From the sequence record MT995927.1: DNA of 64,000 bases. The stretch is one strand, 5' to 3'. A program made the translations under genes and the position numbers. A model generated the notes under the pieces. That model was not told where the DNA came from. It saw only the letters and a program-made list of their open reading frames with translations, and made no database searches. Within the stretch, counting starts at the first letter, position 1. Each line of letters begins with the position of its first letter. Positions 1,582 to 56,535 of the stretch are shown here, one piece after another.

Positions 1582-1602
1582 GCCCTCCCATTACGGGAGG
1601 GC
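1582..1602. terminator. bidirectional hairpin between convergent genes
   Basis: GCCCTCCC-ATTAC-GGGAGGGC. Confidence 0.8.
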
Positions 1603-1617
1603 TATATGTCGTTAATA

Positions 1618-4943: not shown

Positions 4944-6080
<1,137 letters not shown>

Positions 6081-6088
6081 CAGCATAA

Positions 6089-6109
6089 GCCCTCCCATTA
6101 CGGGAGGGC
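6089..6109. terminator. bidirectional hairpin between convergent genes
   Basis: GCCCTCCC-ATTAC-GGGAGGGC followed by TTATG and a T-run. Confidence 0.8.
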
Positions 6110-17040: not shown

Positions 17041-17115
17041 TTTCTATTTTCCTATTTTGGTAATACTAAGTTAAACAACGATATGATACTTTACTAATCG
17101 TCAATGGAGTTTAAT

Positions 17116-25879
<8,764 letters not shown>

Positions 25880-25937: not shown

Positions 25938-26243
25938 ATGTCTCTACTTAAAAAGATCGGTCTTGCTCTAATTGGATCAGAAGGACGTAAGGAAGTTTTT
26001 GAACAAGAGTTAACTAAACTATCAAATACTAATGCAGTTATTGATCAAATGGTGATTAATGTACTGGGTAGTAAGAAGAAGTTAAATGACTTCCTAATTG
26101 AAGCTGAAGAAATTGATAATAAGAAACTAGGCTTCATTAAAAATCGAGCCGAACTTATTAAACTAGTCAAATCTAAATATTCACAAGACCCTCGGGTTGC
26201 CGATGTTGTAGTGTCACTTTACATTGGTGGTTTCATTTATTGA
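25938..26243 (+). CDS. hypothetical protein
   Basis: 101 aa ORF. Confidence 0.7.
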   Translation: MSLLKKIGLALIGSEGRKEVFEQELTKLSNTNAVIDQMVINVLGSKKKLNDFLIEAEEIDNKKLGFIKNRAELIKLVKSKYSQDPRVADVVVSLYIGGFIY

Positions 26244-26250
26244 GGTAAGT

Positions 26251-26943
26251 ATGTCTAAACCTAATCTTGAGTGGTTAGCTTCCTTAGAAAGTAAAGAAGC
26301 TAAAAGTACAGTAGATGCTTCTGATATGGATAATGACCAAAAGGAAGGTAGTGATAAATCACAACATGACGAAGCTTCTGAAACTGAGAAGAATATAACT
26401 GCAACTGATATACAAATTGCAATTGAAGAATATGCGCGTATCCGTGCATTAACCACTACTAAAGATCTTCCAGCTGACCCTGAACCAGGCGATACTTATC
26501 ATGTAAATGGGGTAGATTGGATTTATCAAGAAGATGGTGGATGGGTAACTATGCAAGGTATTTATGGCCATGAACATTTTGATGAAAATGGTCTAAATAT
26601 TGAAGCAAGTGGCATTGACCAGAAATCAGGTGCAACTAAACGTTATGTGGTAACTGGTTATAATGCTCAGACTAACCCAGCTGCTATGCCTGGTGATAAC
26701 CTGACTGAATGTGTTATCCTAATGCAGAATGGACTTGTTCCAGAAGTTGGTGTAAATGGCCTAACTGCTGACTGTCTAATTAAAATCGTTAAAGATTTAT
26801 TTGAAGGTTACCAAACAGGCCCATTTGCATGTGAAGAGAATCAGGTAGTGATTAATTCAATGGACCGTGCTCTTAGTGCAATTCATCAACGCTTAGTACG
26901 GCGTAAAGAACAAGGTACTGAAGGTACCTATAGTGGTAATTAA
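26251..26943 (+). CDS. tad1: fusion protein with C-terminal Tad1-like (anti-Thoeris/anti-CBASS sponge) domain
   Basis: ATG 26251 after GAGG; C-terminal ~120 aa GVNGLT..LIKIVKD...YQTGPFACEEN...AL...R..R...GTEGT resembles Tad1 family pattern from recall. Confidence 0.7.
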   Translation: MSKPNLEWLASLESKEAKSTVDASDMDNDQKEGSDKSQHDEASETEKNITATDIQIAIEEYARIRALTTTKDLPADPEPGDTYHVNGVDWIYQEDGGWVTMQGIYGHEHFDENGLNIEASGIDQKSGATKRYVVTGYNAQTNPAAMPGDNLTECVILMQNGLVPEVGVNGLTADCLIKIVKDLFEGYQTGPFACEENQVVINSMDRALSAIHQRLVRRKEQGTEGTYSGN

Positions 26944-26949
26944 CATATT

Positions 26950-26967
26950 GCCTCCCTTCGGGGAGGC
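26950..26967 (+). terminator. hairpin ending tail gene block
   Basis: GCCTCCC-TTCG-GGGAGGC-TTTAT. Confidence 0.8.
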
Positions 26968-26980
26968 TTTATATCGTATT

Positions 26981-27005
26981 AAAAAAAATTTGAGATTTAT
27001 ATTAC
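26981..27005 (+). promoter_or_regulatory. early promoter (TATATTAC 26998-27005)
   Basis: AAAAAAAATTTGAGATTTATATTAC. Confidence 0.75.
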
Positions 27006-27050
27006 TAATGTGTAATTAGGAAAATAACTATCTAGTAAAGAGGAATCATA

Positions 27051-27545
27051 ATGAACGTTGTAATCTTCACTGCCCGACCTATTGGTTATAAAGTTCCTGG
27101 TCCTAACTCCGCTGTAAATAAGTTTGAACTACATACAGCTAATGCACCTAGTGTATATAGTTCTTCACCAGGATTACCAATTACCACTCAAGAAAGTAGT
27201 TGTATCTATACACTCACTTCGAATCATGAGCTAGTCGCTGGCATCACCGATAATGATAACTCCCTCATGGTTTTTAGACTAGTACTTGCGTATAATAATG
27301 ATACAGCTAACTATCTAATTAGTACCCAGGTTATTGATAGTAGCGCTGAACTAAAAGGAGTGGAAATCATTAGTGAACTCAGTTTCAGTGTAATTGATAC
27401 TGGTGCTCATGCGATTCGTCGAGTGAATTCGATCGGTGTATGTGAGGCTGTTGCCGCTCGATGGTCGCCAGTTGCAATTGTAGCTGATACTAGTGGTGAA
27501 GACTTTGGCGATGTATGTACCTCATATATCAAATCGAGTAACTAG
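27051..27545 (+). CDS. hypothetical early protein
   Basis: first ORF after early promoter, SD GAGG. Confidence 0.7.
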   Translation: MNVVIFTARPIGYKVPGPNSAVNKFELHTANAPSVYSSSPGLPITTQESSCIYTLTSNHELVAGITDNDNSLMVFRLVLAYNNDTANYLISTQVIDSSAELKGVEIISELSFSVIDTGAHAIRRVNSIGVCEAVAARWSPVAIVADTSGEDFGDVCTSYIKSSN

Positions 27546-35902: not shown

Positions 35903-35913
35903 AACAACATAAT

Positions 35914-35934
35914 GCCCTCCCATTACGGGAGGGC
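35914..35934. terminator. bidirectional hairpin between convergent genes
   Basis: CATAAT-GCCCTCCC-ATTAC-GGGAGGGC-TTATG. Confidence 0.8.
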
Positions 35935-35942
35935 TTATGCCG

Positions 35943-37892
35943 TTAAACTTTTACAAGTTTATCATTTTCTATTTTCCAATTAGCATGGAAAGAAATTGGT
36001 TGACCAGTGGTCTCATCAAGAATGTCACCAGTCTTTAACCTATTTTTAATAGCTCGATTATTTCCAAAGAATGGAACTAGTTTGGCTACTGTTACATCGG
36101 CTAATCCTGGATCTTTCATTACATACCAGCCAGGCGTTGAAGCCAGTTCATCATACTGGACAACTTTAGAAGTATCTGCAAAGATAACAATATCACCATG
36201 TCGTCCGTTCTGGACACGTTGTGATAGTTTACCCCATGTGGAGTTATTATCATAAACATATACATTAGCTGTATTTAATGTCTCACCAAGGAATGTACGG
36301 CGTAATGCAGTCAATACTATTGGTTTTATATTAATGTTATTCTTATATGCATTCGCTACACGATACATATACTTGGTCATGCTAAGATTAATATATTCAT
36401 AAATTTTAGCTTTACTTATCCCTTTATAATCATCCCATGCCATTGTACCTATAAGGGATGCTTCATTATAAAGAGAAGCAGGTTTTGAACTAAGTACCAC
36501 TTGATGCTGCATTGTGTAAGTATAAGGTACACGTACGTTAATACGTATCTGATCATTATCATGGATTAAAAGAGTTGATCCATGAGTTATCAGATCCCAC
36601 TGAGTAATGCCCTGACTAAATAAGAATGATCCAACTAAATAGCCATTTATTTGAATATCGCCTAGATAATCCTGATGGTCAGTACCATTTGAGTAACCTA
36701 GATTAAGATCAAAATAACGCTTAGCTGTTAGTATCTGAGTAGTATCAATAGCTTGGCCATTATCACGTGCAACAAAGATACCATCATCTACACCAACTTG
36801 GAATCTAAATGAAATAGCATACGGTTTATTAGGATTTTCAGATGTCGTACAAAGAAAATTGTAAATGTACTCGCCAGTATGATCGAAGGTAAATTCAGGA
36901 ATATCTTCTTTGTTATACGCTGGGAAAGTAACAAGCTTAATCTCACTTTCACTTGAATCACCTTTGATAACAAAGTCAGTTACTTGACCATTACCAATAG
37001 ATTTATTCATACCTGTAAACAAACCAGATGATGCAGCTTTTGGTGACCAGCTTAGCATCTGATTTACAGTATATTGAACATCTGACCTATCAACAACACC
37101 AGAGAAATAAGAACCAAAATTAAAGGCTAGTCTATTAGCGGTAAATGCAAAACTACCATTATTTTCTTTAGCATCTTCAATATTAGTGTAATCTCTTGAA
37201 GCAGAATCAGTTATAACAAAGATACCATTACCCGATTTACGCCAAGTAGCTAGATTATCAATAGTCGCCTGACTCACTCTTTCAGGAGTTAATGCACCAG
37301 TATTATGATCTTTAGTAGAGAATAGAATACATGCATAATACTTATTAAGATCTGTTAAAGTAAGGTCTACTGTGCCACCCATCATTTCTGGGTAATAAAC
37401 ATCATAGGTAGAATCTTGTACACGAGCAGCCGTATCTAGTATCTTTTTAAAACCATTACCTGACGTATTGAGGACTGAATAAGGTTCACTAGGATTACTA
37501 TCTGTGATTACTAAGAATTTCTTTCCAGTTGATTCGTACTTACTACCATTCCTAATAAACCCAATAGCATTATAAAAATATCTTACCCATCCCCATAGAT
37601 CTTGAGGGTTTGTTGTATTAGCCGGAATTTGGTAAGTATCATAGTTTAAATTATAGAATTTTGGAAAACTACAATCATAAAGAACATTACCAGTGCCATC
37701 TTGCACAACAGCAATAAATGGACTACCACCTGTTGCAGGGTCACCATCATAAGCAATGTATTCAGAGAGCACCGGAGGTAACTCCGGGCTCACTGTATAA
37801 TACACCTTCTGAATATCTGAACTAAAGTTAAATTTAACTTTAGAGTTTAGTGCCACAGGACCCGGCACTTGCGACGGGACAATAGAAGGCAT
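35943..37892 (-). CDS. virion structural / tail-associated protein (phiKZ gp131-like family)
   Basis: 649 aa; VLSEYIAYDG, FIAVVQDGTGNVLYDCSFPKFYN, GNGIFVITD. Confidence 0.6.
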   Translation of the reverse strand: MPSIVPSQVPGPVALNSKVKFNFSSDIQKVYYTVSPELPPVLSEYIAYDGDPATGGSPFIAVVQDGTGNVLYDCSFPKFYNLNYDTYQIPANTTNPQDLWGWVRYFYNAIGFIRNGSKYESTGKKFLVITDSNPSEPYSVLNTSGNGFKKILDTAARVQDSTYDVYYPEMMGGTVDLTLTDLNKYYACILFSTKDHNTGALTPERVSQATIDNLATWRKSGNGIFVITDSASRDYTNIEDAKENNGSFAFTANRLAFNFGSYFSGVVDRSDVQYTVNQMLSWSPKAASSGLFTGMNKSIGNGQVTDFVIKGDSSESEIKLVTFPAYNKEDIPEFTFDHTGEYIYNFLCTTSENPNKPYAISFRFQVGVDDGIFVARDNGQAIDTTQILTAKRYFDLNLGYSNGTDHQDYLGDIQINGYLVGSFLFSQGITQWDLITHGSTLLIHDNDQIRINVRVPYTYTMQHQVVLSSKPASLYNEASLIGTMAWDDYKGISKAKIYEYINLSMTKYMYRVANAYKNNINIKPIVLTALRRTFLGETLNTANVYVYDNNSTWGKLSQRVQNGRHGDIVIFADTSKVVQYDELASTPGWYVMKDPGLADVTVAKLVPFFGNNRAIKNRLKTGDILDETTGQPISFHANWKIENDKLVKV

Positions 37893-40739: not shown

Positions 40740-40763
40740 AAGGAGCCCACCAGGGGCTCCTTT
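40740..40763. terminator. hairpin closing the GC-rich island
   Basis: AAGGAGCCC-ACCAG-GGGCTCCTT-TATG. Confidence 0.75.
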
Positions 40764-40777
40764 ATGCCATTCATTAT

Positions 40778-40800
40778 AAATTAATTTAAATCTATATTAC
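40778..40800 (+). promoter_or_regulatory. early promoter (TATATTAC 40793-40800)
   Basis: AAATTAATTTAAATCTATATTAC. Confidence 0.75.
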
Positions 40801-40846
40801 AGGATTACCATAAAGATATTTATCCTTTTATAATGAGGAAAAGATT

Positions 40847-56260: not shown

Positions 56261-56300
56261 GCATAAATAGGAGAGCTATTTAGCTCTCCTTTATTGCATT

Positions 56301-56325
56301 AAATTTTTTTTGAAATCTATATTAC
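56301..56325 (+). promoter_or_regulatory. early promoter (TATATTAC 56318-56325)
   Basis: AAATTTTTTTTGAAATCTATATTAC. Confidence 0.75.
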
Positions 56326-56361
56326 ATATTTGGTCAAGTCATATCAAAATAGGTAGTTATA

Positions 56362-56535
56362 ATGCTAGCATTACATTCACTACTATTATTAGTTATAGTG
56401 ATTTGTTATATAATTCATAAGTGGTTGTGGTATACTTTCAATATGTTTAAACTAAAAGACATTATTAAAAATAAAGACAATTTAACTAATGATGAACTAT
56501 TAAAATTACTCATTGATAAAATAAAGGCAACCTAA
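56362..56535 (+). CDS. 57-aa membrane protein (MLALHSLLLLVIVICYII...)
   Basis: own translation; first ORF after early promoter; stop overlaps next ATG. Confidence 0.6.
   Translation: MLALHSLLLLVIVICYIIHKWLWYTFNMFKLKDIIKNKDNLTNDELLKLLIDKIKAT

Follow-up and report, generated by a model that had tools for sequence, protein, structure and literature searches.

A phiKZ gp184 (Tad1) ortholog as a probable capsid-anchored, virion-delivered immune-signal sponge in a Pseudomonas jumbo phage

A 64,000-nucleotide stretch of sequence record MT995927.1, referred to here as the window, contains on its plus strand (positions 26251 to 26943) the ortholog of gp184 of the jumbo phage phiKZ, also known as Tad1 (Thoeris anti-defence 1). 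The C-terminal half of the protein is a Tad1 domain. Our best explanation, held with high confidence, is that the whole is a two-part head protein that is anchored in the capsid and whose Tad1 half is ejected as an immune-signal sponge. A first-pass annotation, made from the letters of the DNA, had already proposed a virion-packaged Tad1 sponge; this interpretation is correct and has been published, and the recovery of a published mechanism from raw sequence has value as a positive control. The additions of the present work are modest, namely a module boundary at residue E108, anchor-only genes in the phages Psa21 and RVTF4, and a predicted loss of trinucleotide binding. The gene and its parts are as follows.

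26251..26943, plus strand: whole gene, ortholog of phiKZ gp184 (Tad1), 230 residues and stop codon (open reading frame listing; PDB chain 8y6v_I; DNA identity to Phikzvirus records).
26251..26289, plus strand: N-terminal leader ending in S-L-E13, residues 1-13, a candidate head-protease propeptide or capsid-targeting leader ([S/A/G]-x-E motif; precedent in gp93).
26290..26460, plus strand: acidic linker, predicted to be disordered, residues 14-70 (14 D+E against 7 K+R; predicted local distance difference test score, pLDDT, < 50 over residues 1-68; poorly conserved in homologs).
26461..26571, plus strand: small beta module (LPxDPxxGxxYxV..W..GxW), the capsid anchor, residues 71-107 (model strands; piece modelled in 8y6v_I).
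26566..26574, plus strand: candidate head-protease site G-H-E, residues 106-108, which would free the Tad1 domain (E108 motif; homolog comparison).
26575..26940, plus strand: Tad1-family signal-sponge domain, residues 109-230, a beta sheet and two long helices (Tad1 matches in the PDB; profile; AlphaFold2; Foldseek; pocket residues).

A phmmer search of the PDB with the window protein matched chain I of 8y6v ('gp184', 230 residues) over its full length with an E-value of 1.7e-150 and ~96% identity. Nine substitutions in 230 residues separate the two proteins, and the pocket residues discussed below are unaffected by them. The chain in the PDB starts at the methionine encoded by the ATG at 26251, from which the gene runs to a stop codon ending at 26943; a GAGG Shine-Dalgarno sequence lies ~5 nucleotides upstream and overlaps the stop codon of the preceding 101-residue gene. 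A TTG start at 26224 (239 residues) was dismissed, since it overlaps the upstream gene and the ortholog in the PDB begins at the ATG. The 1.2 kb of DNA surrounding the gene are 100% identical to phages T2P, U1B, U5, and phi9_PA9, and 96-99% identical to ~45 further Phikzvirus records. The source of the window is a phiKZ-type Pseudomonas aeruginosa jumbo phage.

Structures of Tad1 proteins were matched over residues 117-226 in the PDB search with the single sequence, CmTad1 (8kbb) at an E-value of 8.9e-7 and CbTad1 (8kbh, 8kbg, 7uav, and 8kbe) at 2.1e-5 to 2.8e-5. Residues 108-230 have 2,045 relatives at E ≤ 0.001 among 1.84 billion cluster representatives, and a profile made from the window domain and 46 stand-alone relatives matched the Tad1 structures with E-values of 1.6e-24 to 8e-23. 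The AlphaFold2 model of the domain, built with the profile alignment, has a mean pLDDT of 94.4 and shows the fold of the Tad1 family: an N-terminal antiparallel beta sheet (strands 9-15, 22-28, and 46-51 in domain numbering), followed by two long C-terminal helices (66-82 and 88-113). The top 20 Foldseek matches of this model are exclusively CbTad1 and CmTad1 (probability 1.0, template modelling score 0.58-0.74), and the next match has an E-value of 0.08. Identity to stand-alone Tad1 sponges is only 20-26%; the likeness is nevertheless far beyond chance, and residues ~109-230 are a true Tad1 domain. The first-pass annotation had called the C-terminal ~120 residues Tad1-like and proposed the Foldseek comparison; phmmer, profile, and fold agree with it, and the peptide strings that it quoted are all present in the translation (MSKPNLEWLASLES, LPADPEPGDTYHVNGVDWIY..GGW, SGATKRY, MQNG, GVNGLT.DCLIKIVKD, YQTGPFACEEN, DRAL, and RLVRRKEQGTEGT). 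Its description of the N-terminus as being of virion type and its suggestion that the sponge is packaged and ejected are borne out by published work on phiKZ.

The ~96% identical gp184 is modelled in the phiKZ capsid structure 8Y6V. It lies on the inner capsid surface as part of a vertex-binding complex, where it fills the gap that separates gp86 from a hexamer of the major capsid protein; each such complex contains a single gp184, each vertex has five complexes, and the head protease gp175 cleaves the protein (PMC11297242). Injected gp184 has been detected by western blot in translation-blocked cells infected with virions carrying the tagged protein (PMC10449902). A preprint identifies gp184 as Tad1 and as non-essential, and describes how its N-terminus is wedged in the capsid while the head protease releases its C-terminus, which is injected (bioRxiv 10.1101/2025.11.23.690004). 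In a review, phiKZ Tad1 is stated to inhibit two signal-based defences, the cyclic-oligonucleotide-based anti-phage signalling system (CBASS) and Thoeris (PMC13282480). For this activity the preprint and the review are secondary sources, both citing Li et al. (Nature 635:719, 2024), and the 2023 preprint of Li et al. makes no mention of phiKZ. AntiDefenseFinder annotates gp184 (PMC11724313), and this Tad1 is the only jumbo-phage anti-defence protein described so far (bioRxiv 10.1101/2025.11.23.690004; PMC13282480). Capsid location, proteolysis, injection, and anti-defence activity should carry over to the window protein.

Several observations indicate which part of the protein is likely to be held in the capsid. 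In 8y6v_I only 34 residues are modelled; they are 97% identical to the window protein (one mismatch in 34) and superpose on its model at a root-mean-square deviation of 2.1 Å in Foldseek. In the capsid, gp184 'mainly consists of beta-strands' (PMC11297242), and residue 75 (A here, T in phiKZ) is the sole difference from phiKZ inside the beta-rich region. Taken together, the single mismatch, the published description, and the position of residue 75 place the resolved piece, in all likelihood, within residues 55-108, that is, in the beta module. The strands of this module (82-85, 88-92, and 98-100) have a pLDDT of ~70 in the full-length AlphaFold2 model. The module also had weak fold matches to small protease inhibitors (probability 0.4-0.6, E > 1), which we attribute to chance.

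The window protein contains seven [S/A/G]-x-E motifs, including those at E13 and E108. A cut after E13, as the first-pass annotation had suggested, would have a close precedent in phiKZ gp93, which is 'processed at SLE-13' (PMC5694885): the 13-residue leader of the window protein aligns with that of gp93, and the motif at E13 is retained in 16 of 19 homologs. The leaders of gp92, gp94, and gp95 are similar. The N-termini of phiKZ gp92-gp95 (L007:5653-11757) and window positions 26251-26289 have in common a short leader ending in [SL]-L-[ED]-S near residue 13, which suggests a shared capsid-targeting or propeptide signal. An [S/A/G]-x-E motif also lies at most 16 residues upstream of the Tad1 domain in every homolog (n=19). 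E108 is a likely site for the cut that would free this domain, because the anchor-only protein of Psa21, described below, ends at residues aligned with 103-107, which is stronger evidence than the motif.

In the mechanism that we propose, synthesis would be late, and the N-terminal part would bring the protein into the prohead and wedge it beneath the capsid vertices. Head-protease cleavage after glutamates, likely E13 and E108, would then leave the beta module attached to the shell and release the 122-residue C-terminal Tad1 domain inside the head. In the next infection the freed domain would be ejected along with the DNA, ahead of any phage gene expression, and in the cell its kept pocket would sequester glycocyclic ADP-ribose (gcADPR), which signals in Thoeris, together with the cyclic dinucleotides that signal in CBASS. 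The view that the ortholog is a late-made head protein, expressed together with the neighbouring tail genes, is very probably right as part of this explanation, for which our estimate is a joint one. Delivering a sponge along with the DNA is a notable strategy, since signal-based immunity such as Thoeris and CBASS can in this way be blunted before phage gene expression.

Some points weigh against this explanation. The experimental evidence all comes from phiKZ and none from the ~96% identical variant in the window. Scans of the window protein and 19 homologs against Pfam-A and NCBIfam gave no relevant match, and the full-length AlphaFold2 model is poor (pLDDT 54); its matches to Tad1 had a root-mean-square deviation of ~17 Å, and it was replaced by the domain-only model for this comparison. 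The [S/A/G]-x-E motif is common, occurring in 36% of 22-residue windows of the N-terminal extensions against 56% directly upstream of the domain, so that the position of a motif says little by itself. Furthermore, by our arithmetic from the published stoichiometry, each virion would carry ~55-60 copies of gp184. For a stoichiometric sponge this dose is low, and protein synthesised late in infection may therefore contribute as well.

The same few binding sites per virion would suit a sponge that acts mainly as a newly made cytoplasmic protein late in infection, with packaging as a by-product or for capsid stability. The gene does belong to a late virion operon ended by its own terminator, most characterised Tad1 proteins are stand-alone and cell-expressed, and stand-alone forms make up 84 of the domain's 166 closest relatives. 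We nevertheless consider this account improbable, since injection of gp184 into translation-blocked cells has been directly detected and signal-based defences fire early, when the injected protein alone is present. Three N-terminal packaging solutions with the same cargo in related jumbo phages, together with the detection of 201phi2-1 gp280 by mass spectrometry, point towards selection on delivery. In any case, late expression and packaged delivery are not mutually exclusive.

The ligands of an ejected sponge can be predicted from the structures of CbTad1, in which F82, N92, R109, and R113 contact gcADPR and 2',3'-cyclic GMP-AMP (cGAMP), and mutation of these residues abolishes gcADPR and cGAMP binding (Li et al. 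preprint). Cyclic trinucleotides are contacted by R90 and T97 (R88 and T95 in CmTad1), which are also part of the hexamer interface, and Tad1 homologs differ in ligand range (Li et al. preprint). The CbTad1 residues were mapped onto the window protein via the phmmer alignment, with the numbering offset verified on 6 of 6 residue types. The first four correspond to Y187, N197, R214, and R218, so that the gcADPR/cyclic-dinucleotide pocket is kept, and R90 and T97 correspond to E195 and N202, so that the trinucleotide contacts are not. Columns of the alignment were counted for 19 N-extended homologs (the jumbo-phage group) and 46 stand-alone relatives. N197, R214, and R218 are identical in all 19 of the former, where position 187 is always F or Y; among the latter, N197 and R214 are found in 46/46 and R218 in 44/46. 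At the two trinucleotide positions, R or T occurs in 0/19 of the jumbo-phage group and in only 6/46 and 5/46 of the stand-alone relatives. Their rarity in stand-alone relatives as well marks the trinucleotide site as a variable feature of the family and not as a condition of membership.

Because both contact residues are replaced, binding of cyclic trinucleotides is predicted to be lost: the canonical site is absent, binding in the canonical way is unlikely, and the ligand range is probably narrower than that of CbTad1. Loss of binding at the gcADPR/dinucleotide pocket is unlikely, since the residues of the pocket are kept. A hexamer (a trimer of dimers) is expected of the Tad1 family, and the gp184 ortholog, in which two residues of the hexamer interface are replaced, may or may not form one. 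In phiKZ, an nlp1 mutant is sensitive to NucC, which belongs to CBASS signalling through cyclic triadenylate (cA3), and is rescued by Acb2 although the phage has its own Tad1 (bioRxiv 10.1101/2025.11.23.690004). The connection is ours, and this rescue would fit the loss of the trinucleotide site.

The first-pass annotation had pointed to substitutions at three conserved motifs (HxY, DRL, and REN) as possible signs of a different ligand or of lost binding. The substitutions are real in the alignment to CbTad1, where H-E-Y has become K-R-Y, D-R-L has become D-L-F, and R-E-N has become E-E-N. A changed ligand range is plausible for the cyclic-trinucleotide site only, and the part of the claim that concerned lost binding does not hold up well for the pocket; the substitutions would point to a narrower range and not to a loss of binding. 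They could also be taken to mean that the domain has been retargeted to some other ligand, for example another nucleotide signal, and is functionally no sponge for Thoeris or CBASS. In this respect, K130 and R131 are invariant in the jumbo-phage group, while stand-alone relatives mostly have H; the window protein has K in place of the first residue of the common H-R-Y motif, and the varied ligand range of Tad1 homologs would leave room for such a change. Retargeting is even less probable than mainly late, cytoplasmic action, however. The four residues essential for binding of gcADPR and cGAMP in CbTad1 are kept, an R at the position of R131 is found in the majority of stand-alone relatives (28/46), and inhibition of both CBASS and Thoeris is stated for phiKZ Tad1 (PMC13282480).

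Least probable of the alternatives is a structural minor capsid protein in which the Tad1-like domain is a decayed passenger without immune-signal binding. Its place in the vertex-binding complex, where gp86 and the major capsid protein flank it, the changes to E195, N202, and K130, and the lack of Pfam and NCBIfam matches would all agree with this. Across genera, however, it is the C-terminal domain that is best conserved (54-61% identity), with N-termini that diverge or have been exchanged, and three pocket residues never vary, the fourth being F or Y. The piece bound to the capsid is, in all likelihood, the beta module and not the Tad1 domain, the gene is dispensable for growth and so no needed structural part (bioRxiv 10.1101/2025.11.23.690004), and anti-defence activity is reported in the literature.

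The full architecture of leader, linker, beta module, and Tad1 domain is confined to Phikzvirus records, 47 in all. In Psa21 (gp249, L002:2357-2632) and RVTF4 (XDJ14874, L005:2357-2635), syntenic genes of 91-92 residues lack the Tad1 domain and consist of leader, linker, and beta module. Both end just before the candidate site at E108, the Psa21 protein at the aligned ...GLYGH. In PhiPA3 (gp217, L003:2273-2842) and 201phi2-1 (gp280, L004:2264-2863), the syntenic genes encode a W-x-x-[SG]-L-E leader that an acidic linker connects to a Tad1 domain, the beta module being absent; according to its annotation, gp280 was identified by mass spectrometry. This leader-plus-linker form is a second packaging solution for Tad1 cargo. 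Besides the stand-alone forms, the 166 relatives closest to the domain include 64 that are extended by at least 50 residues at the N-terminus and 16 that are extended at the C-terminus.

A broader proposal can be made from these arrangements, tentatively and at somewhat less than even odds in our judgement. The N-terminal 107 residues may be a portable head-loading cassette made up of the SLE-13 leader, acidic linker, and beta anchor, which stands alone in Psa21 and RVTF4, is fused to Tad1 in Phikzvirus, and is replaced by the leader-plus-linker version in PhiPA3 and 201phi2-1, with swapping of cargo and anchor and with trinucleotide binding lost. If this is true, jumbo phages would exchange cargo and anchor modules to deliver immune-signal sponges, and, with trinucleotide binding lost, phiKZ could need other means against cA3-signalling CBASS. 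The E108 boundary, the anchor-only genes, and the combination of a kept dinucleotide pocket with a lost trinucleotide site could guide the annotation of other Chimalliviridae genomes.

Some side observations concern the protein and its homologs. Stand-alone Tad1 homologs of 126 residues in the Bastille-like phages BCP8-2 of Bacillus (L008:1366-1746) and Xoo-sp15 (L009:1366-1746) carry the annotation 'putative structural protein', given for their similarity to Bc431v3 orf166, and sit between genes for DNA polymerase III gamma/tau and a RecA-like protein. For the window protein itself, the PHROGs families that were matched are all of unknown function. A precomputed Pfam domain, PF24729.3, is listed for 16 of the 19 homologs (P0001-P0019); hmmscan of the same 19 against Pfam-A gave no PF24729.3, even at E ≤ 1.

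Comparison with known systems shows where the window protein stands. It shares with phiKZ gp184 (8Y6V chain I) its length, its architecture, the genes gp181-gp183 upstream, and a thymidylate kinase cluster downstream. Among the substitutions that set the two apart, T189 (A in phiKZ) adjoins Y187 and Q188, and A75 is in the anchor module. The stand-alone Tad1 proteins (CbTad1, 7UAV/8KBE-H; CmTad1, 8KBB-D; and SBSphiJ7 Tad1) have the same fold, profile family, and gcADPR/cyclic-dinucleotide pocket. They differ from the window protein, a packaged head protein with Tad1 as its C-terminal half, in being cell-expressed proteins of ~120-140 residues, and the R90 and T97 of CbTad1 are E195 and N202 here. 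The closest parallel in processing is phiKZ gp93 and the paralogous inner-body or ejected head proteins (gp92-97), in which a short leader is cut by gp175 after S-L-E13, an N-terminal piece is kept in the capsid, and a C-terminal part is ejected; these differ in their unrelated cargo (helix-rich PF12699-type domains), their much larger size, and their high copy number. PhiPA3 gp217 and 201phi2-1 gp280 likewise follow a gp182 homolog and share the leader and a Tad1 domain that is 54-58% identical, but have no beta anchor, the acidic linker joining the leader straight to the Tad1 domain.

Outside the family, IPI* of phage T4 and DarA/DarB of phage P1 are packaged anti-restriction proteins. A short N-terminal targeting sequence directs them into the head, where the prohead protease trims them after a glutamate, and their ejection along with the DNA lets them act before gene expression; IPI* binds a restriction nuclease and thereby blocks it. 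As a packaged, protease-trimmed, and ejected anti-defence protein, IPI* is the closest functional analogy, with no relation in sequence or fold, and the window protein would differ from it in sequestering small-molecule signals. The capsid-targeting sequence of T4 and the cut after glutamate are mentioned in the work on phiKZ head proteins (PMC5694885).

The surroundings of the gene contain the following features.

17104..23829, plus strand: gp181-like virion protein, 2241 residues, with a lytic transglycosylase domain (match of residues 1870-2055 to the gp144 endolysin/lytic transglycosylase, E 3e-57).
23885..25879, plus strand: gp182 ortholog, 664 residues, baseplate spacer ring protein (PDB 9xqs_K 'PHIKZ182', E 0; role from PMC13250141).
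25938..26243, plus strand: upstream neighbour, gp183-like, 101 residues (open reading frame; same strand as the gp184 ortholog, with no terminator between).
26950..26975, plus strand: intrinsic terminator ending the gp181-gp184 transcription unit (hairpin 26950-26967; 7-bp GC stem, TTCG loop, T-rich tail).
26974..27005, plus strand: AT-rich, early-promoter-like motif ending in TATATTAC, upstream of the next gene at 27051 (count of the RATYTATATTAC core; conserved copies).

The gene had been placed at the end of a block of tail genes, last before a terminator, with an early promoter starting only after it. The upstream neighbours are indeed tail and baseplate genes, and gp182 is the baseplate spacer ring protein (PMC13250141), but the product of the gene itself is a head protein and not a tail protein. 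No terminator was found between the gp182 and gp184 orthologs, and the strong hairpin right after the stop codon of the latter (-16.7 kcal/mol, z -4.65, with 0/200 shuffles folding as well) ends the unit as predicted. It is of the same style as the terminator motif published for phiKZ (PMC10914365); a gapless search with the published consensus did not match it, its stem being shorter. The consensus was matched at four other sites in the window, at 1583-1612 (+), 6080-6109 (-), and 35904-35943 (both strands), where 0 are expected by chance, and the overlapping pair at ~35.9 kb on both strands looks like a bidirectional terminator.

The probable early promoter was likewise placed correctly, with the AT-rich motif preceding the next gene. 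Its 12-nucleotide core, RATYTATATTAC, occurs exactly four times in the window, always on the plus strand, against 0.12 expected; the copies lie within 110-200, 26958-27048, 40753-40843, and 56278-56368, and ~30 nucleotides are conserved among the four. Early promoters of phiKZ are described as AT-rich motifs of ~10 nucleotides near -10 (PMC7598289), and the four motifs ending in TATATTAC are probably phiKZ-type early promoters, all in the same orientation, as judged from this description. A 14-nucleotide promoter probe and counts of 10-mers were swamped by AT-rich noise, and only the 12-nucleotide core gave a clean signal.

On the 3' side of the gp184 ortholog are small genes and a thymidylate kinase, and a PDB search with the 101-residue gp183-like protein gave no match. 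In the gp182 ortholog, residues 331-549, a beta-sheet region, match 11lx_H ('Tail tube initiator complex protein gp203') and 36za_rp ('Capsid decorator gp77') at E ~1e-67; related domains thus bear quite different names across the structures of jumbo phages.

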